A model generated the notes under the pieces. That model was not told the DNA's origin and did not search any database. It was given only the letters and a program-made list of their open reading frames with translations. This document shows, piece after piece, positions 601-13,095 of a stretch of 64,000 nucleotides of DNA. Origin of the DNA: Mytilus edulis. Its lineage: Eukaryota. Each line of letters begins with the position of its first letter. Within the stretch, counting starts at the first letter, position 1. The position numbers were made by a program, and so were the translations under genes. The DNA lies in contig NC_092345.1 of assembly GCF_963676685.1 (NCBI RefSeq), positions 47,616,001 through 47,680,000 on the forward strand. Direction: 5' to 3'.

Positions 601-998
601 TACATTCATCACTCATTTACTAAAAAAAATATACATTTTGTCCGTAAATCTACGACATCTTTTAAAATGTTTAACCCTATGTTAATCTGTTTGAGGCACA
701 CTCGACAAAGTGTCTTTGAATATCCATGTAAAAACTATAATATTTGAACATTTATTAGTGAATTAATTGGTCCACACTATATTCAATCCTGATGCGGCTT
801 GATTTGGATTTTTCGATTAAATTTTCCTCAAGTCCCTGAAAATGTTTTCTTTCAGTATACTCTTAAATCTATTGAACTAACTATAACAAAACTTGACAGT
901 AATACTTGAAATAAGTAGTTTTTCACAGACAAATTTTCACAATCAGTCTATTCGATAAAAAAGTCTTGCTTAGGTGTTAAACCAACAAATCATAGTAC

Positions 999-2288
999 TG
1001 TAACGAAAACCGAGCGGTCAAGCCTTAGTGTTTAACTATAAATGTGTATCCCTCAGTGTGTTGCTATAAGAATGTTTTTTTGTAAGAATGTATAAATATA
1101 TAGGAAATAAAAGTTATAATTGGTGACCCTTCTTTGGTAGTGTGGTACTCTGGTATCGTGGAACTCTGGTTTTCTGTATACAACCTGGTAAGGTTGGTTC
1201 CTCTGGTAGGGTAAAGACTCGAATAGAAAGGCGTACATTGGGATATAGGATTTTGGTCTGTGAAAGTGTGTGAGGTTCTGGATAATGGTAACTCTCCGTA
1301 TTGACGTATGGAAGAATAACAGACTCGTTAAATAAAAAAAACAACTTATATTAACTTTAATATGCATTAAATATCAACAATACATATATATATTTTGAAT
1401 AACTTAACGGTGTTCAATTCTATTAATAGACTCAGAAAGTTTAATAATTGTAATTTAGTAATCGGCAAATGGTAAACCTCAATACTTAAAGGTTCGTTAT
1501 AAATAAACTCATCATAGATACCAGGAATGAAATTTTGTATTTGTGACAGACGCGCGTTTCGTCTACAAAAGACTCATCAGTAAATAAAAAAAAGTTAAAA
1601 AAAGGCCACATAAATTACGAAGTTGAAGAGCATTGAGGACCACAAATTCCTAAAAGTTTTGCCAAATAGAACTGAGGTAATCTATTCTTGAGGTAGAAAA
1701 GCCTTAGTATTTCAAAAATTCAAAGTTTTGTAAACAGTTAATTTTTCATTATGTCCATATCAATGATAATTCATATCAACACAGCACAGAAGTGCTGATA
1801 ACCCACATAATACGGATGTAGTCTCCTCGTAATGCTTGTTCTGGTAAATGGTATCTATACTTGTATTAAAATCGCTTGGAATTAGCGAGTGTTAATTGCC
1901 AAATGTAAAGTCGTACTGAAGACTTATCTGTATTCTCCGTATTTATACTTAGGTAAACTAATTTACCGATTTGGTTAACCATTTACCATTTTGGTGTACT
2001 ATTCACCATTTACCATTTAGAAAAATACATAAATTACCGAAACCGGAACTGGTTATAACCAAAATAGGTAAAGGTCATTGTTAGTCAATTAAAATAAACA
2101 ATTCAGAGGTGTTCCGAATTTAAAAACAAAGGCACAGATAATAAAAAAAAATAGAATTACAATGTTTAAACATAGTTATACAAGAAATATATAATAACAA
2201 AAATCATTTATCGGTACGATTAAAACAACGTCATTACAAAAATTTAGGCGAAACCAGTTCCATTTCATGGAACCGACATTTTGTCACA
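999..2288 (-). repeat. Gypsy 3' LTR (carries a retrozyme-like insert at ~1501-1800)
   Basis: Colinear with 3715-5447. TG..CA ends; abuts the PPT. Confidence 0.85.
1501..1800 (-). mobile_element. Retrozyme/Penelope-type repeat with a type I hammerhead ribozyme core (1549-1580)
   Basis: Minus strand reads CTGATGA-GTCT-TTTGT-AGAC-GAAA-CGCGCG-TC: hammerhead core, stem II, palindromic stem III. Absent from the sister LTR. Homologous to 28152-28490 and 29385-29468. Confidence 0.75.
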
Positions 2289-2419
2289 CTTCCTCCACCT
2301 TTGAAAAATAATATTTGTCCTCAAACAAGAAAATGTATTTTTTTTTACTTAAAAATCAGTTCTTCAATATTATTCATTAAAATATCCCATAACATGCATA
2401 GTGCCGTGTTAAGGTCTAT

Positions 2420-3630
2420 TATTTTGGAAGGCTTCATATTCAAGAGCTACTTGAATAGCGTTATTAATACTTTTTGCTTTGGTCTAAAATAGCCTATTCC
2501 ATGTCTGCATCATTTAGGGAATCAACATGATCAATAAAACAATCGCGCGCTAATTGTTCTTTAACCTCTATCGGAGCTGATGGATACGCTAGTCTTACTA
2601 GACGTTTTATGTCTTGGCCTAACACAGGTGTTTGTTCCGTGCGTCTGAGTATTTTACTTTTCATATGCGCCCTGTATACTTCAGCTTGGTTTTCTGGTTG
2701 AAAAAGATACGCTAAGGCGTATAAAATTGGTCCGCATCTCTGGTCTTAAATCGGCTAACATACTTTGGGCTCTTAAGCTAGTAGCTAGTTCTAAAGCTTT
2801 CTCTATGTCAGACCATTTGTTTATTGCTGCAATTATTTCAAACTGAACTAAATAGTGTCCCCAATTACCCTCCCCATCATAAAGTGCTGGTTTCTTTTTG
2901 TATTATTTGTATTTTGCAAGTTAATATCATAATAACGCCCAAAAATTTGTTATTTACTAATGCCAGCATAATTTAAATTACTGGTTATTTCACCTGTACG
3001 ATGTTCGTGGTCCGTCCCGTTATTCCCCACTCAGAGGGTCAAAGGTAATGCTTGGTACGTTGCCCCCTGATTATGGTGTACGCCCTGGTCCAAAGTCCTA
3101 GGTAAGTCTCTCGAATCACATATACCCAGTCGGGCATCAGATTCAAAAGACGTCATGACTCCTCTTGTACTCCCGGAGTCTCCCTCAGCATTATCCATTG
3201 CTTTCTGACTCCAAAATCAATACCTAGACTCTCTGGCAACATGGTCAGGTTCCTGTGGTAAAGGGACCAAAAGAGTCGTCGACTCATCACCAAAATTCTG
3301 TTTTACCGTACGCGCTTCATTTTTTTTCAAATGCACAACCGTTGCTCTGTTTGAAACTTCCGGGTTTTTCGCTTGGTCAATGGCCACTTTCCTTGACGGT
3401 GATACATCACCTGACAATTACCTATTGTTATTATGATAAATACCATCCTTGTCGTATCTTTTCGTATTCTCTTGTGAGGGCCATTGATCTTGGTTCACTC
3501 TTATGTTTATCTCTCCGGTCGGCGTCAGATCATTGAAAATTTCACAGGACCGAGATCGGGGAAGCACTAGTTTACCCTGGGCAATCAACCTAGGTTTTTC
3601 AAATTTACTTTCTACTTCCGCGCTATCCAT
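2420..3630 (-). pseudogene. gag: Gypsy gag pseudogene
   Basis: Minus-strand translation of ~2900-2420 gives KPALYDGEGNWGHYLVQFEIIAAINKWSDIEKALELATSLR..DIKRLVRLAYP..EQLARDCFID..AIQVALEYEAF (Gypsy capsid) with stops and frameshifts. N-terminal pieces are ORFs 3418-3630 and 3217-3417. Confidence 0.8.
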
Positions 3631-3714
3631 TTTACTTTATAATTATGTATACCTTATCTTAAATATATTACCTAAGAATATAAAAATGTAGGTACATGCC
3701 TCCACTGCCACCGC

Positions 3715-5447
3715 TGTAACAAAAACCGAGCGGTCAGGCCCAAGTGTTAAACTATAAATGTGTATCCCTTTGTGTGTTGCTACAAGAATGTGTTTTTGTA
3801 AGAATATATAAATATATAGCAAATACAAGTTATAACTGGTGACCCATCTTTAGTAGCGTGATACTCTGGTATTGTGGAACTCTGGTTTTCTGTATACAAC
3901 CTGGTAAGGTTTGTTTTTCTGGTAGGGAAAAGACTCGAATAGAAAGGCGTAATAAGAAATAGGTTTTGGTCTGTGAAGTATGTGGTTCTGGATAATGGTA
4001 ACTCTCCGTATTGACGTTTGTAAGAATAATAGACTCGTTAAATAAAAATGTGTAAGGGTTCCGCGGAACCCAGTGTCTCGCCTACTTTTGCTGTAAATTG
4101 CAGGCTCAACAAAAATGAGGAAAAAATCAATAAAAATATTCTTCTTGATACTATCTTATGATTGTAAGAAGCTTCTGTCCAAGTTTGGTAAAAATCTATG
4201 ATAGTTTAATGAATATAATAAATGTTTTAAAAACTTTAACTGCAGACTGTATGTAATGTTACCCCGCAGAAAAACTAAGTCCATTTAAAAGTAAAATACG
4301 GAAACAATGGATTTATTTTTTAACAATATTTACCTCTTGATACTATCTTATGATCATAAACAAGCCTCTGTCCAAGTTTGGTACAAACCAAGCATAGTTT
4401 AAGAAAGTTATTAAAATTCTAAAAACTTTAACCACAGAGTGAATGTAATGTTTCCCCGCAGAAAAGTCCATTTATGAGTAAAATACGGAAAAAATGGAAT
4501 TTTATTTTTACAAAATTTACTTCTGGATACTATCTTATGATCATAAACAAGCTTCTGTCCAAGTTTGGTAGAAATACAGTACAGTTTAAGAAAGTTATTA
4601 AAATTTCAAAAACTTTAACCACAGAGTGAATATTTGTGGACGCCGCCGACGACGACGGAATGTAGGATCGCTTAGTCTCGCTTTTTCGACTAAAGTCGAA
4701 GGCTCGACAAAAATCAACTTATATTAACTTTAATATGCATTAGATATCAACAATACAGATATATATTTAATGAATATGTCAACAGTGTTCAATTCTATTG
4801 ATAGACATTTTATCAGCCTTCTTCCGTAAATAAAGAAAATGAATAGCGGAAAAATATACTCAGAAAGTTTAATAATTGTAATTTAGTATTATGCAAATGG
4901 TAAACCTCAATACCCAAATATTCGTTATAGAGTGTTTTCTAAGTGAATCTTGTAAAGGAATTTAAAAAACCTACATAGTACGGATATAAAATGTAGTCTC
5001 CTCGTACTGCTTGGTCTGGTATATGGTATCTATACTTATACTTATGAAAAATCGTACTTAAGACATATCAGTATTCTCCGCCGTATTTATACTTAATATG
5101 TAATTGAAACCAATTTACAGATTTGGTTTACATGTACCATTTACTATTTTGGTTTATCATTTACCATTTACCATTTAGGAAAATACCTAATGACCGAAAC
5201 CGGAACTGGTTATTACCAAAATATGTAAAACGTCATTGTACGTCTTTTGAAATAAACAATTCCGAGGTGTTCCGAATGTAAAAACAAAGACAAGGATCAT
5301 TACAAGTTTTATAGTTACAATGTTTAAACATAGTTATACAAGAAATATATAATAACAAAAGTCATTCATCAGTACGATTAAAACAACGTCATCACACAAT
5401 TATAGGGGAAACAAGTTCCATTCCAGGGAACCGTTATTTTTGTAAAA
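3715..5447 (-). repeat. Gypsy 5' LTR (carries a HINE insert at 4049-4710)
   Basis: Homologous to 999-2288; the outer terminus is mutated (TGTAAAA vs TGTCACA). Confidence 0.85.
4049..4710. mobile_element. Helentron-like HINE with ~190-bp core tandem repeats
   Basis: Left hairpin GGGTTCCGCGGAACCC. GATACTATCTTATGAT at 4147/4339/4526. (GAC)n tract and terminal hairpin TTCGACTAAAGTCGAA. Inserted in an A-run that is uninterrupted in the sister LTR (1334-1341). Confidence 0.75.
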
Positions 5448-7704
5448 GTACGTAATATTACACAGTTTCATATGAAAAAGGATCGCAAAAAATATTCTCC
5501 TTGAATTTGACAGTTGAAGGAAGTTAACCTTACATTTCATTGTAAAAAAAAATTAATTGAGTCATAAACACATTGCTTCGGTGCTTCAAAATAGGATTCT
5601 TTTTCATTCGTTTTATTTTCTATAAAATATTTTGGAAACTAGGGGTTGCATGCATAGTTAAAAAGATTTTACATTACAGGAGATGCTGTCCATGTGGTGA
5701 ATCCATTTTTGCTCGTTTTGGATTCGAGTCATTCATTTGTTTGTTACCTTGCTTTGTTTTCTTAATTGGTTTGTGAGAATTAAACATCGTAAATCTGTAG
5801 GGTCAAAATAAGAAATCAGTAAGTAGGGAAACCTGTTCATGTGAACCTGATTAAGATCAATCATTTCTTCACGGATACACAACGGTATTAAAATCCTGAC
5901 AAAACGAGAGTTTTACAAGATCTGAAAAAGTGTAAAACGCATGAAAACTGGTTGTTAACTGTGTTTTAATAGAATGAATCGGAATATTCACTTGAAACAG
6001 AATATTGATGTTATAATCAATTATTATACACGCATCCATTTTCTTATTTTAAGAAATAATGTAAAGGTATGATGTGTTCTTTATTTGACCCTGAATGACA
6101 AAGCAAATGAGGTACTTTTAAAATTATGTTCAGCCAATTTTGTCTTTTTGAAATAGGAAAGAAAAATACTATTAACAACTGTTATGCAATTAGAGGTTTA
6201 GATAGCTGTAAAACAAGGTTTGACGAGGTTTAACCAACCGTTTTCTCCTACCAAGTCGGGAATATACCAGTTGTGTTGGTTCATATAGTATAGTATAACG
6301 TTTGATTTTATCAGGGTTTAATGCCTCTTTTTATAATGTAACTTTAAGTGCAATTTTTTTTAACACGTCGTTTCCTCATATATTTAAATCACTCGATATC
6401 AAACAAGTTTTTAGTAGGTTTCGATTTTCTTAGTTTTAAGTTTTCTGTTTAGTGTTTTGCAAAATTGCTTGTTTGTTCTCTTTTTTTAAATTGCCATTTG
6501 TTTTGTCATTTTTTTTTTAATTTCCCTAAGTATCATCCGTCCCCTTTTTTATCAGATTTTATTAAGTTTACACTTAGTCTAGTAGATGAATAAAAGTCTT
6601 AAAAAGTCAATTTAAGCTTCACAAAATCGACAAAGTATGAACAAAACACGTGTAGTTATGTCCAGTAGTTCAATCAATTTCCAGACTTATCCACTGCTAT
6701 AAATTCAGTACTGTTCAGGCAATTCGTTTGCAGTCAATTCACTACTGTTTAAGAGCTTTTCGGACAATTCATTATGATGTTCATGTAAATAACATTTACC
6801 GAATAAACTGAACACGCACTGGACAGATCTTAATTGACTGCAAGGAAATTGTCGGAACAGTACCGAATTTAGTGAAGTTTGAAAATCAACTGAAAGACTG
6901 AAATTAACTTTATAAATTATTGTTCAGCCTTTTAACATGTTTAAGATGAGCTCAGTTCAAATTGATAGCGTCAGATCTTAATTGGTCTATTTGTGCTGGT
7001 CCATTTATAGCAGGTGTGTCATTTAGGATTTTACTGTGACAAAATGCCCATCTTTGTATAAGATGACTCATTCAATACAATTTTTAGAAATATGAAATAA
7101 ATGATTATTACTTCAGTCAAAAGAAACATAATGATTTGAAGATGTGGTATGATTGCCAATGAGACAACCATCCACCAGAGTTAAAATGAAGTTGAAGTAT
7201 GCAATTGAAGGCCACCGTAAGAACAATCATATCGTATAGTCGACTATAAGAAGTTTTTCACTTTGCTCCCGTACCAATCATGGTACTAAATGGGAACAGT
7301 CAATGAGCTTTTGCAAATTATTGATGTATATACTTATTTCCAATGTCCGTTTTATGAATCATAATCAGTAGCATTTATAAGAAAGATTTTACCTGTAACA
7401 ACAGTACGAAGAAAGAGTCAAATTATAGAAAACGTTCGTAAATTGTTTCAAATAGTGTGTTAGTGCAATTTGCTATAATACACTAGTTCAGGGAAACAAT
7501 GCGCATGTGCAAGATCGATCGTGTGATTTTGCGTTATCAACTAATAAGTTACGAGATTTGATAAACTGGAGGCATTATCAGTTTATTGATTTATCAGATC
7601 GGCATCGTAATTACTGTAGTCAGATTAATGAATTTTCAAGAAGCATACACATGCTATGGCAAACGAAAATATATACAATATATGACAATAAAAAATAAAT
7701 AAAT

Positions 7705-8250
7705 TATTCTGTTACACCGTTCCGTAATTTGTATAGTTCGTTTGATTATATTCTTAATCTGTTTATGTGTTCCAGTCTAGGAGGATTATTCATCTTTAAC
7801 GTTAAAACATCGTACCGTCGCTACCTTTCCCTCACTCTCACGTATCCGTTACAGGAAAACTGCAAGGTCATTACGATCACCAGGAACATTTCGTTGAGAC
7901 GTCATCTTGGACACAATTCGTGGCTAACCACAGAGTGAGTTTATTATAAACATTGTAATTAAAGCCTTCAAATTGCCTTCCGTATAATTGAACCTTTTCT
8001 CCGTGAAATACTGGATATGTAACCGTTCTTGAAAGTACAACATTTTCTCGGATTCAACGGACTGTGCTATCAATTATTTTGGACATTTCATGCACTAGAA
8101 ACATTAATTCAACACATTGTAAAATTGTATTTTATTTGTTTTTCAGCTTTTTACCATTTGTTAGATTGGTTTGAGAATAAATTATCAGCACCTGATAGTC
8201 TTGTTGCTTGAGCCCAATCGTCGGTTAAACTTAATGGTCAGGCCATTACA
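7705..8250 (+). repeat. Bel/Pao 5' LTR
   Basis: Direct repeat of 12545-13090; TATTCT..ATTACA; AATAAA at 8176-8181. Confidence 0.95.
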
Positions 8251-8502
8251 GTAAAAAGTCTACAACTTGCCTGTTGTGTCTCACAGATAACGCCACTCCA
8301 CATTAGTTCTACAGCTACAGAACAACCTACCTGTTGAACCCTGCATTAACGCGGCATACCTTGACTTACAGTAAATTGACGACAACCTGTCTTTCCATAT
8401 CCAGACAAGGAACGACAACGTAGCAACTGACATACCTTTACACTGACAGTGGACTACATATCTTGTGTATACTCGACAGCAACCTAACAACGTTGAGTCA
8501 AC

Positions 8503-11500
8503 ATGGATCCCAGTCATGAGGAACAACAAGAAGAGATACAGACCCCAGAGGGAAAGGTTCCAGATTTAGAACTATTACAAAATCCATCTAATACAATCCA
8601 GGCAGATGAAAATCCCGAGGCAAGGCGAGTTCGTGACCTCACGGAAAAAGGACAAGGAGCTTTCACCGAAAAACGTGACAAGTTCTGTCAGGAACTAGAG
8701 GCTCTCTGGGCAGACATTGAATCCCAGTTATTGGAAGTAACAGCGCCCCCTAACGATCTCCAGCAACTCCTAACAGTCCAGGACACACTTGTTAAAGCCT
8801 GCAATAATTATCGTAGGCTCACAGATGAATACCTAGAATTTCTGAAAAGGACCAGAACATTGGAGAGTCAAAAAGAAATTGATGCATGTAAACTCTCTTT
8901 GGATTTACGTCTGTCCAAAGTGGAACTTGTTATGGAAAAACTACACGAGCATCGCCTCGCCCTAACAAAGGCCAAATCCACTAAAACAAAGACCTCAAAA
9001 GGTAAGAAAACCTCACGCAGTGGTAGCTCTAACGTGTCAGACATGTCAAGCCTAGCACGGAGAAAGCGTGCCAAGGCAGAGGCTGCCAAGTCTAAAATAG
9101 CCTTTGTAGAAAAACATGCCATTATCCTACAACAGGAAGCAATGTTAGAGGAACAAGCCCTGTTCAGACAAATTGAAATGGAACAGGAAGCAGCACACAA
9201 AAAGGCAAAAATGGAACAAGAAGTCGCTCAGGAGGCCGCACAGAGAACAGTTCAGTTAGAACAAGAGGCTATGCGCAGGAAGGCTCAAATGCAACAAGAA
9301 GCCGCACGAGTAAGCCGAGAAAAGGCCCAACTTAAAGCCAAATTTAACCTTCTTGAAGCACAGAGAGAAGCTGCAGCCGCAGAAGCCGAGGCTCGTATCC
9401 TGGAATACGATGATAGCCAAGCCTTTATCGAACTACCTGACGAAAAGGAAGACCCGCTCCAGCGTGTGCAAGATTTTGTCAACAAACTTCCTGTATCAAC
9501 AGCTGTGAAGGAAGTAACAGCACCTCAAAAGAAAAAGCAATTTCCTGTTAAAATTGAGCTGAGCCACGAAGCACCAGCGTTCGTGCCGTCCGCGGCACTG
9601 AACTTGCTGTCACAGACATCTGCTGTCTTACCTTCCGATACTAAGTCACCGGAAGTTACCTTTATCCCAGATCTGGGATTAGTAACCGGTATACAAAAAC
9701 TAGGCCTTTCAGATGAGAGCCCTATTGAACACCAAAAACAGGGTGTAAAAGAAGCGATCCCTGTCTTACGCACAAAACAAGATGTTATAGAAGAAATCCA
9801 TGTTTCACACACAAAACAAGACCTATTAGAAGATATCCCTGTTGCACACCAACAACAAATCAACCTTACATCAGAGATAACTAGATTCCTCTTACGCAAG
9901 GACTTGCTATTCTCCCGATTAAAAAGCTTTAATCTGGCAGAATCCTTTCATACTTGGAAAGCTAGCTTCAAAAACGTGACTGATGAGTTACAAGTCTCTG
10001 ACTCAGAACAGATCGATTTACTGATCAAGTGGCTCGGTCCAGAGTCTGCTAAACACGCCATTAGCATAAGAGCGTCGAACGCTAATAATCCTACCATAGG
10101 AATACAGAGATTATGGCAGAGGCTTGACGAGCGGTATGGTGCTCCAGAAATGTTGGAAGCCTCTCTCATGAGTAAACTCGTCAACTTCCCTACCTTGACG
10201 AACAAAGATAACGCACGTCTTTATGACTTGTCTGATATTCTTTCAGAAATCGAATATCACAAGGAAAACCCCAAGCTGGGATGTTTGCTTGCTTATTTCG
10301 ACTCTTCGTCCGGAATAAATCCTATTGTAGAAAAACTGCCATACGGACTCCAAGAAAAGTGGATTACAAGGGCTTCAAGATACAAGTCTAAATATGAAGT
10401 TGCCTTTCCACCTTTCACAGAATTATCTGCCTTCATCAGGGAAATTAGCAAAATTAAGAACGATCCTGGGTTCATCTTTGGCTCAAAAGTAACACCAAAT
10501 ACAAAAGAATCTATGCCAAGGTTCACATCTCAGACGTACTCTAAAGTCAACGTTCATAAGACAGCTGTTGAACAGCAAACTGAAGACAGCAGTCAACAAC
10601 AAGATCTGTGTATCCTACACAAGACAATGCATACCTTGAATGAATGCCGAGCATTCCGAGCCAAACCGATCGAGGAACGCAAGGAACTGTTAAGACAAAA
10701 CAATGTGTGCTACAAGTGTTGTGAGTCAACCACACACAGAAGTCGGAACTGCAACGCAAGCATCAGTTGTAACGAATGTGGAAGTGAACGACATACCACA
10801 GCACTTCACATCACTAGACCACAACAATCTGAAGGTTCCCAGTTTAGCTCACCCAGACCAGCCTACGGCGGGGAGCTTACACAAGTCTACGGCGGGGAGC
10901 AGACAGAGTCCGCTGAAACAAAGTTAACCTCTGTGAGTTCGATCTGCACAGAGATCTACAAAGATCATAAGAGCGAGAAATCTTATGCCAAGATATTACC
11001 TGTGGACGTGTACCACAAGGACAAGACAGACAAAATTATCAGAATGTACGCCATTATTGACGACCAAAGCAACCGGTCTCTTGCCTCGCCTGAATTCTTC
11101 AGTCTGTTCAACGTTCGGGAAAAACCTGAAAACTACTCTCTTACGACATGCTCCGGCAGAATAGCTACCTCCGGGAAAAGAGGAAAAGATTTCGTCATAA
11201 AATCTGTACATAGTGACGTACAGTTTGATCTGCCTACATTAATTGAATGTAATAATATTCCCAATAATCGAGACGAAATTCCTACTCCTGAAGTTGCAAT
11301 GCATCATCCTCATCTGAAAGAACTCGGAGGAAGCATTCCACCAATAGAGGAACGTTGTCAAATTCTACTCCTAATTGGAAGGGACCTTATAGAGGCACAC
11401 CACGTCCTTGAACAACGCCTAGGACCATCCCGAACTCCATTTGCCCAAAAGTTGAGACTTGGTTGGGTCATAATTGGAAATACATACATTGACAAGCAAA

Positions 11501-12360
11501 CTGTTCCTATTGAAGTCAACACAAAGATAACCAACGTTTCAATTACGGAATCAAAACAACGTCTTGCCTCAAGACCGGAAATAGCCATCATCAAGGACAA
11601 TAATCCAATTGTTGTTCAGGCTAACGACCAATACGTTCATTCGAATGCCAAGCTTGCGAAGTCGTATTCCGTACAATTCATTGAATGTACAGAACCTAGT
11701 TCCAAGCCTGGTAAACGCACAAATTCCTCTAAAGGGACAGCACTCGTGTCACTAAAAGCAAAATCTTTGACCTCGATAGAAAAATCTATAAATAAAGAAA
11801 ACTTCATTCCGAAATCAACAGGACCTGAAGTTCATGGTGAGGAAATCAGTAGCATTCACAAATATATTCCGATAGAAGGACCTATTGCCAATATCAATAT
11901 GCCTTTGAGCAAGCAACCTCTACTCCGAGGAGGAAGCAGAATTGCCAAATCTGATTTGAATTTTAGTGAAAAGGAACCAGTAGTCTTATCTGGACATCAT
12001 CAGAAAGTAACACCTTTTCTTGGACATTACTACAACACAATCAAACATAGAGGACCCCACTTCATAGATAGAACAACTGGATCAGCAAGATGGAACGTTA
12101 GGACGAAACGCTTAATTTCGTCGGATACTCAAAGAGATGTGACATTTCGCCAAACTGGAATAGGATCAAGTATTAGCTCTCGTCATACCCATCGGAGGAC
12201 CACCTTCAACCGTCGTCGCCGTCTAACAACGTTGGAAAAAACAGTTCCTACTATCTCAACAGCAACTATGGAACATTTTGCGAATCACAGCAACCGCATT
12301 AGAGAGATCCTTCTTCAAAGAACAAGAAACTGCGCCGAACCCAGTTTTCCGTGGAATTAG
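8503..12360 (+). CDS. gag-pro: Bel/Pao Gag-aspartic protease polyprotein with eroded pol remnant (1285 aa)
   Basis: Coiled-coil N-terminus. Pao capsid region (FHTWKASF..LIKWLG..LWQRLDERYG). Three Cys/His knuckles (CILHKTMHTLNEC, CYKCCESTTHRSRNC, CNECGSERHTTALH). Protease YAIIDDQSNRSL..LLIGRD. No YVDD RT motif and no DDE integrase core. Confidence 0.92.
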   Translation: MDPSHEEQQEEIQTPEGKVPDLELLQNPSNTIQADENPEARRVRDLTEKGQGAFTEKRDKFCQELEALWADIESQLLEVTAPPNDLQQLLTVQDTLVKACNNYRRLTDEYLEFLKRTRTLESQKEIDACKLSLDLRLSKVELVMEKLHEHRLALTKAKSTKTKTSKGKKTSRSGSSNVSDMSSLARRKRAKAEAAKSKIAFVEKHAIILQQEAMLEEQALFRQIEMEQEAAHKKAKMEQEVAQEAAQRTVQLEQEAMRRKAQMQQEAARVSREKAQLKAKFNLLEAQREAAAAEAEARILEYDDSQAFIELPDEKEDPLQRVQDFVNKLPVSTAVKEVTAPQKKKQFPVKIELSHEAPAFVPSAALNLLSQTSAVLPSDTKSPEVTFIPDLGLVTGIQKLGLSDESPIEHQKQGVKEAIPVLRTKQDVIEEIHVSHTKQDLLEDIPVAHQQQINLTSEITRFLLRKDLLFSRLKSFNLAESFHTWKASFKNVTDELQVSDSEQIDLLIKWLGPESAKHAISIRASNANNPTIGIQRLWQRLDERYGAPEMLEASLMSKLVNFPTLTNKDNARLYDLSDILSEIEYHKENPKLGCLLAYFDSSSGINPIVEKLPYGLQEKWITRASRYKSKYEVAFPPFTELSAFIREISKIKNDPGFIFGSKVTPNTKESMPRFTSQTYSKVNVHKTAVEQQTEDSSQQQDLCILHKTMHTLNECRAFRAKPIEERKELLRQNNVCYKCCESTTHRSRNCNASISCNECGSERHTTALHITRPQQSEGSQFSSPRPAYGGELTQVYGGEQTESAETKLTSVSSICTEIYKDHKSEKSYAKILPVDVYHKDKTDKIIRMYAIIDDQSNRSLASPEFFSLFNVREKPENYSLTTCSGRIATSGKRGKDFVIKSVHSDVQFDLPTLIECNNIPNNRDEIPTPEVAMHHPHLKELGGSIPPIEERCQILLLIGRDLIEAHHVLEQRLGPSRTPFAQKLRLGWVIIGNTYIDKQTVPIEVNTKITNVSITESKQRLASRPEIAIIKDNNPIVVQANDQYVHSNAKLAKSYSVQFIECTEPSSKPGKRTNSSKGTALVSLKAKSLTSIEKSINKENFIPKSTGPEVHGEEISSIHKYIPIEGPIANINMPLSKQPLLRGGSRIAKSDLNFSEKEPVVLSGHHQKVTPFLGHYYNTIKHRGPHFIDRTTGSARWNVRTKRLISSDTQRDVTFRQTGIGSSISSRHTHRRTTFNRRRRLTTLEKTVPTISTATMEHFANHSNRIREILLQRTRNCAEPSFPWN

Positions 12361-12544
12361 TCTATTCTGGAAACTTTATAGTGAAATGTCGTAAGTTGAG
12401 ACGTGATATTTCTCACACGACCTATAGTGGTTATTTCATCTGTATATATTCAATTTATATTGGGATTTATTCATTTATCTAGATCTTATTCTCATTCGCA
12501 AATAGTTATAGAATAGTGATATCAGATAGACATCAGACGGGGAG

Positions 12545-13090
12545 TATTCTGTTACACCGTTCCGTAATTTGTATAGTTCGTTTGATTATATTCTTAATCT
12601 GTTTATGTGTTCCAGTCTAGGAGGATTATTCATCTTTAACGTTAAAACATCGTACCGTCGCTACCTTTCCCTCACTCTCACGTATCCGTTACAGGAAAAC
12701 TGCAAGATCATTACGATCACCAGGAACATTTCGTTGAGACGTCATCTTGGACACAATTCGTGGCTAACCACAGAGTGAGTTTATTATAAACATTGTAATT
12801 AAAGCCTTCAAATTGCCTTCCGTATAATTGAACCTTTTCTCCGTGAAATACTGGATATGTAACCGTTCTTGAAAGTACAACATTTTCTCGGATTCAACGG
12901 ACTGTGCTATCAATTATTTTGGACATTTCATGCACTAGAAACATTAATTCAACACATTGTAAAATTGTATTTTATTTGTTTTTCAGCTTTTTACCATTTG
13001 TTAGATTGGTTTGAGAATAAATTATCAGCACCTGATAGTCTTGTTGCTTGAGCCCAATCGTCGGTTAAACTTAATGGTCAGGCCATTACA
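12545..13090 (+). repeat. Bel/Pao 3' LTR
   Basis: Direct repeat of 7705-8250, preceded by the PPT. Confidence 0.95.
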
Positions 13091-13095
13091 TAAAT

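Follow-up and report, generated by a model that had tools for sequence, protein, structure and literature searches.

Candidate introns in the LTRs of mussel Bel/Pao retrotransposons are predicted to assemble a self-primer when spliced out

How does a Bel/Pao retrotransposon that has no tRNA primer-binding site (PBS) begin reverse transcription? We examined this question for an element of Mytilus edulis, located within a window of 64,000 nucleotides (GCF_963676685.1, NC_092345.1, positions 47,616,001 to 47,680,000, forward strand; coordinates below are those of the window) in a 1.37-Gb genome. The 5′ LTR (7705-8250, + strand; 546 bp, TATTCTG...CATTACA) equals the 3′ LTR (12545-13090, +) with one mismatch, at 7867. 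The pair is flanked by a 5-bp target-site duplication, TAAAT (TSD; 7700-7704 and 13091-13095), and a polypurine tract, AGACGGGGAG (12535-12544, +), lies directly upstream of the 3′ LTR in this and other copies. The LTR limits are thus exact; they were re-checked by the TSD in another copy, and 5-bp TSDs were verified for other copies and families. The 5′ LTR is followed directly by GTAAAAAGTCTAC (8251-8266 reads GTAAAAAGTCTACAAC), with no TGG.

A first-pass annotation, made from the sequence alone, had proposed that removal of an intron at 7935-8146 would create an 11-nt complement of the bases next to the LTR, and this is correct at every coordinate. A consensus donor, AGA|GTGAGT, lies at 7932-7940 (+) with its GT at 7935, and the octamer CTTTTTAC (8147-8154, +) directly follows a polypyrimidine-tract acceptor, TTTATTTGTTTTTCAG, which ends at 8146. 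Joining 7934 to 8147 removes a candidate spliceosomal intron of 212 nt (GTGAGT...TTTTTCAG; 7935-8146, +) and gives AGA+CTTTTTAC, the exact reverse complement of the putative PBS GTAAAAAGTCT (8251-8261, +), with the octamer alone complementing 8251-8258. Pairing stops at the LTR edge (A8250 against C8155). The 3′ LTR carries the same candidate intron (12775-12986) and exon-2 head (12987-12994). When random 20-mers were tested against every GT..AG pair in this LTR, an anchored junction complement of 11 nt or more arose in 6 of 3000 trials.

The annotation had treated the element as Bel/Pao, which is supported, but the element is not a complete one. It is a recently inserted, 5.4-kb non-autonomous derivative with a single ORF of 1285 aa (8503-12360, +), which encodes a coiled-coil N-terminus, a gag core with a sub-threshold DUF1759 match (23.8 against a cut-off of 25.4 bits), two zinc knuckles, a protease-like region and a degenerate integrase N-terminal remnant, but no RT, RNase H or integrase domain. 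Residues 480-1000 are 78-81% identical to polyproteins of 2130-2200 aa that carry PF05380 and PF18701 and belong to the likely autonomous partner. The genome holds many copies of about 4.8 kb with the same structure, at least 40 LTRs at 87-100% identity, and dozens of intact ORFs of about 1300 aa, so this is an amplified non-autonomous family. The PBS is unchanged in 16 of 18 copies that keep the 5′ LTR junction. Covariation within the family was uninformative, because the PBS and the junction are nearly invariant among the copies aligned. Among 29 LTR copies, the exon-1 tail plus donor (7932-7940; 99.2%), the last 31 nt of the intron (99.2%) and the exon-2 head (99.1%) are the most conserved stretches, against 94.2% for the whole LTR and 92.9% for the intron body.

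We next asked whether the junction and the PBS change together between families, beginning with the autonomous partner, whose LTR limits were fixed by five TSDs. Its LTR is very different in sequence, too diverged from that of the non-autonomous family for a conservation map, and its PBS, GTAAATTGACG, is different as well. The LTR contains CCGTCAA|GTACGT and TTTCTTTCAG|TTTACC, and joining these gives CGTCAA+TTTAC, an 11-nt complement of its own PBS. That the non-autonomous family and its helper have different PBSs, each matching its own LTR, is expected if the primer is self-supplied. A relic PBS of the partner type (GTAAATTGACG; 8371-8381, +) is now internal to the window's element, where homology (91%) to the autonomous family begins at 8370, exactly at that family's LTR/PBS border.

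To widen the sample we took 14 further Bel/Pao insertions of this genome, chosen only by ORF length and Pfam-hit length, without knowledge of their PBS; these families are denoted by letters. Seven have long LTRs (533-751 bp), and all seven show the same design. Families A, B and M join TAATCG+AGAAT, AGTTG+AGAAT and AATCG+AGAAT, opposite PBSs ATTCTCGATTA, ATTCTCAACT and ATTCTCGATT, respectively. Families G and H join GAT+CTTTTCAC and AAT+CTTTTCAC, opposite GTGAAAAGATC and GTGAAAAGATT. Families F and L join CAATACG+TTAAT and CAATATG+TTAAT, opposite ATTAACGTATTG and ATTAACATATTG, with spacers of 4 nt and 2 nt after the LTR, respectively. Close pairs (G against H, F against L, A against B) differ by compensatory changes on both sides: G has GAT with a PBS ending ...GATC and H has AAT with ...GATT, while F has CAATACG with ...ACGTATTG and L has CAATATG with ...ACATATTG. 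Although splice-site consensus was not required in this test, every winning site was a consensus donor (GTGAGT, GTACGT, GTAAGA, GTATGT, GTAAGT) or a pyrimidine-tract acceptor. In contrast, five families with short LTRs (140-215 bp) and resolved ends carry TGG-type PBSs, such as TTGGTGCCGTGAC, and have a best junction match of 4 nt or less; one further family (I) could not be resolved because of satellite repeats. In total, 9 of 9 long-LTR families sampled have a GT..AG interval whose removal gives a 10-12-nt complement of their own PBS, and 0 of 5 short-LTR families do.

To ask whether the design extends to other hosts, we used a 15-protein alignment to collect 95 Bel/Pao loci (L numbers below) from bacterial-MAG and metagenome contigs, which are evidently invertebrate host DNA. 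A scan that does not use LTR boundaries, but requires a strong donor, a pyrimidine-tract acceptor and a target 30-330 nt downstream of the acceptor, found junction complements of 10-17 nt in 19 of 89 loci, against 4 in the mirrored control and 1 in the antisense control. Most of these targets directly follow ...ACA, the typical LTR end, although this was not imposed. These hits were selected by the criterion itself, and only the Mytilus sample and the loci anchored by LTR pairs are unbiased. Where LTR pairs fix the boundary, the anchored test gave 11 nt with credible splice sites, at the exact border or 1 nt from it, in L071, L072, L102 and L119; in L068 it returned 10 nt at an offset of −2, but read by hand, the junction TGC+CTTTTTAC complements 11 nt of the PBS. 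The hosts outside this genome contribute at least 17 further families.

Over all 28 elements there are 25 distinct PBSs, paired with junctions of 10-17 nt, and the split between the two exons varies (3+8, 6+5, 5+5, 7+5, 10+7 and others). In 23 of 28 the PBS abuts the LTR's terminal CA. All donors match GT[AG]NG[TA] and all acceptors have pyrimidine tracts, as the scan required for the 19 metagenome loci but not for the 9 Mytilus families. Introns are 76-536 nt long (697 nt in L068), and the acceptor lies 53-182 nt from the PBS. An AATAAA or ATTAAA occurs 8-63 nt after the acceptor in 23 of 28 elements; in the window's element, AATAAA lies at 8176-8181 (+), 29 nt after the acceptor, and again at 13016-13021 in the 3′ LTR. 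These elements share as little as 32-35% Pol identity with the query, so the design is old and widespread.

The comparative data bear directly on two alternatives. AT-rich LTRs do give junction matches of 10 nt or more in 0.1-2% of random trials per family, but chance complementarity is contradicted by the recurrence of the match in 9 of 9 sampled long-LTR families and in many other hosts, at consensus splice sites and with compensatory changes. Priming by a host RNA, such as a tRNA fragment or small RNA, is likewise excluded, because each PBS matches only its own LTR junction. A second alternative is plain self-priming without splicing, in which TTTTTCAG would be an initiator (TCAG, which resembles an arthropod-type initiator) rather than an acceptor, and a transcript starting near 8145 would pair with the PBS through its first bases, CTTTTTAC. 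The 8-nt contiguous match in this family and the AATAAA 29 nt downstream are compatible with such a start. In other families, however, the contiguous part is only 4-7 nt, while the 3-10 nt just before a distant consensus donor complete the match perfectly and covary with the PBS. We therefore regard this reading as very unlikely.

Is the interval spliced? In L125, the LTR aligns at 86-91% identity with that of the L102-L105 family but lacks exactly a 168-nt stretch, GTAAGC...TTTTAG. This leaves GGACAATCG joined to TTTGACGG, so that the 11-mer complementary to its PBS (GTCAAACGATT) is contiguous. Such a precise GT-AG deletion is the signature of a spliced RNA, either copied back into DNA or assembled from transcripts, and in this related family it indicates removal at the predicted sites; it also speaks against the initiator reading. 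L088, L090 and L127 also carry a contiguous 11-nt self-primer, 101 nt upstream of a PBS that follows ...AACA, so Tf1-like, intron-less arrangements exist within the same group. A scan for contiguous complements was at noise level overall (18 real against 21 control), and only hits with the context of the clade (L088/L090, L125) are credible.

For the window's own family, RNA-seq reads from four runs end exactly at 7934 and continue in unrelated sequence. The donor is therefore used, probably in chimeric transcripts from other copies. No 7934^8147 junction was found at 3 reads or more, at a depth of only about 1-3x, with 6-18% of each run read and in runs that may not come from this species. 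Loose read ends before 7899, which suggested an exon at 7900-7934, proved to be a variant LTR subfamily rather than an acceptor.

Taken together, we favor, with reasonable but not complete confidence, a model in which the minus-strand primer is the element's own RNA, assembled by pre-mRNA splicing; no biochemical evidence of priming exists for any Bel/Pao element, and priming itself is inferred. In this model, transcription would start in the LTR upstream of 7934, and removal of 7935-8146 would join AGA to CTTTTTAC. The 11-nt junction would fold back, or anneal in trans, onto the PBS at 8251-8261, about 100 nt downstream. As in fission-yeast Tf1, the RNA would be cut at the 3′ end of the duplex, after C8154, leaving an RNA that ends ...AGACUUUUUAC, and reverse transcriptase supplied by the autonomous partner would extend this end, copying U5 and R from 8250 back to 8155. 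The strong-stop DNA would then transfer to the R copy in the 3′ LTR (8155 to the poly(A) site after AATAAA 8176), from which everything upstream of the primer site, intron included, would be regenerated. The complement ends where minus-strand synthesis must begin, its length (10-12 nt in most elements) matches the 11-bp Tf1 duplex, and the predicted fold of 8147-8266 closes on the primer/PBS helix around two hairpins (dG −30.1 kcal/mol, z = −2.86). Copying of the primer into plus-strand strong-stop DNA would also keep the PBS and the junction matched, which would explain the pervasive covariation, an inference from retroviral and Tf1 biology. Circularization of the RNA, which the first-pass annotation offered as an alternative to self-priming, has no specific support.

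The model requires either that the 3′ LTR intron remain unspliced or that priming occur in trans, and neither is shown. Occasional splicing of the 3′ copy would give intron-less LTRs of the L125 type. In a trans variant, the genomic RNA stays unspliced and a separate spliced LTR transcript, possibly a short RNA made by splicing the 5′ LTR donor to the 3′ LTR acceptor, is co-packaged and anneals by its junction to the PBS, with the intron copied from the unspliced template. This would explain retention of the intron in all copies without differential splicing of two identical introns in one molecule, and the junction is the same whichever acceptor copy is used. However, no such RNA was seen in the low-depth runs, Tf1, the only studied precedent, appears to fold its own 5′ end back on the PBS, and the roughly constant 50-180-nt spacing between acceptor and PBS, together with the predicted fold-back, fits a cis hairpin. 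We consider the trans variant possible but less likely. It is more doubtful still that the pairing is merely regulatory, masking the PBS or shaping the leader for translation, packaging or dimerization while another molecule primes. Long-range leader pairings seem to control RNA fate in retroviruses and Ty1, and no priming data exist here, but any true primer must also be complementary to 25 different PBSs, which no single host RNA can be; the complement stops at the U5 border; and intron-less relatives have the classical contiguous self-primer layout.

Self-priming is documented for Tf1/Tf2 of Schizosaccharomyces pombe (Levin and co-workers, as cited in PMC6317226). There, as here, there is no tRNA PBS, approximately 11 nt of LTR-derived RNA are complementary to a PBS that abuts U5, the intervening U5/R region is predicted to fold, and the sequence upstream of the primer must be restored from the 3′ LTR copy. 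In Tf1, a Ty3/gypsy chromovirus, the 11 nt are contiguous in the DNA and form the first bases of the transcript, while in these Bel/Pao elements they are split by a 76-697-nt candidate intron. Self-primers predicted in the Tf1/sushi, Tcn1 and TAR (Houba, Osr-1) lineages were recognized by a contiguous complement of 10 nt or more of the post-LTR sequence inside the 5′ LTR (PMC6317226); such screens would miss a split complement, and none of these lineages is in Bel/Pao. Belpaoviridae are described as primed by host tRNA-Arg or tRNA-Gly at an 18-nt PBS (PMC8742986). The short-LTR families in the same genome do have TGG-type PBSs, and the window's element shares Gag-Pol relatives, LTRs, a 5-bp TSD and a polypurine tract with canonical Bel/Pao, but its PBS is not tRNA-like and matches its own LTR junction. 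For the half-tRNA primers of Copia, Ty5 and fungal Helenus, the PBS matches the anticodon-loop region of mature, intron-less tRNA (PMC10886601), so that the complementary sequence likewise exists only after intron removal; there, however, the primer is a host tRNA processed by tRNA splicing rather than, as inferred here, the element's own pol II transcript with a GT-AG intron. In full-text literature searches, we found no description of a retroelement primer assembled by splicing of an LTR intron.

If correct, this mechanism would overturn the statement that Belpaoviridae are tRNA-primed, at least for a large marine-invertebrate clade, and would explain why many Bel/Pao elements lack a detectable PBS in annotation pipelines of the LTRharvest/LTRdigest style. 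It would explain how an intron can persist inside an LTR, and would tie reverse transcription to RNA processing, a possible quality control or way to discriminate genomic from other RNAs. It also provides a simple sequence rule (donor tail + acceptor head = PBS complement) for annotating these elements. A broader hypothesis, which we judge only slightly more likely than not, is that a large, phylum-spanning Bel/Pao clade obligatorily builds its primer in this way, with the 5′ copy spliced to create the self-primer and the intron restored every cycle from the 3′ LTR copy. Reverse transcription would then be licensed by nuclear splicing, and occasional intron loss would produce Tf1-like elements. 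This would be the first retroelement intron maintained through LTR regeneration.

Terminal overlaps of circular-like metagenome contigs, examined as a guide to R, TSS and poly(A), were inconsistent. Donor-aligned sequences, inspected for a TSS a few nucleotides upstream of the donor, show no fixed TATA distance, and a pyrimidine-purine step at the 5′ edge of the complement occurs in 12 of 25, which is suggestive only. Finally, a CRE-like GACGTCA motif (7899-7905, +), a candidate promoter element whose function is inferred, lies about 30 nt upstream of the donor, and TGACGT-type motifs are visible in the LTRs of families A-E and M.

The leader of the non-autonomous element contains, at 8360-8381, a second, now internal PBS of the autonomous-partner type (GTAAATTGACG, 8371-8381), preceded by ...CTTGACTTACA. 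Homology to the autonomous family starts at 8370, exactly at that family's LTR/PBS border. Thus, the non-autonomous lineage seems to have acquired a new LTR, PBS and 119-nt leader by recombination at the priming site. Downstream of this leader, the 1285-aa gag-protease ORF with a degenerate integrase remnant (8503-12360) is intact in dozens of copies, which have open frames of about 1100-1330 aa, and the non-autonomous family may depend on its own gag-protease.

We also noted that the termini of these elements are unusual. The LTRs begin TATTCTG (7705-7711) rather than TG, and the LTR of the autonomous family (locus L032) ends ...CATA, or CACA in one copy; these termini were nevertheless verified by 5-bp TSDs. 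Within the LTR, a CRE-like TGACGT/GACGTCA motif (7899-7905) recurs in the Bel/Pao LTRs of families A-E and M, both long and short, and is a candidate shared promoter element. At the LTR donor (7934-7936), RNA reads break and continue in three or more unrelated sequences; LTR copies probably donate a 5' splice site to chimeric or host transcripts.

In another copy (loci L003/L007; G000:C11:10842170-10847539, in our genome and contig numbering), the LTR at the 5' side is itself preceded by the family's PPT, and at least two elements therefore lie in tandem and share an LTR. Around the insertion of family I (loci L058/L059; G000:C2:32239343-32247164) there is a 24-nt satellite containing CCCTAA units, and upstream of the LTR of family D (locus L048) there is a 55-nt tandem repeat. 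Upstream of the element in the window, direct repeat families D2-D4 (85-91% identical copies 2.7-3.2 kb apart, plus a 187-nt tandem) lie at 998-5440. Finally, the Bel/Pao elements of loci L068-L082 sit in contigs binned as bacterial MAGs (Sedimenticola, Endozoicomonas, Rubritalea, Poribacteria and Thiodiazotropha) and in a Wolbachia chromosome record, which is most likely host-animal DNA, either mis-binned or inserted.
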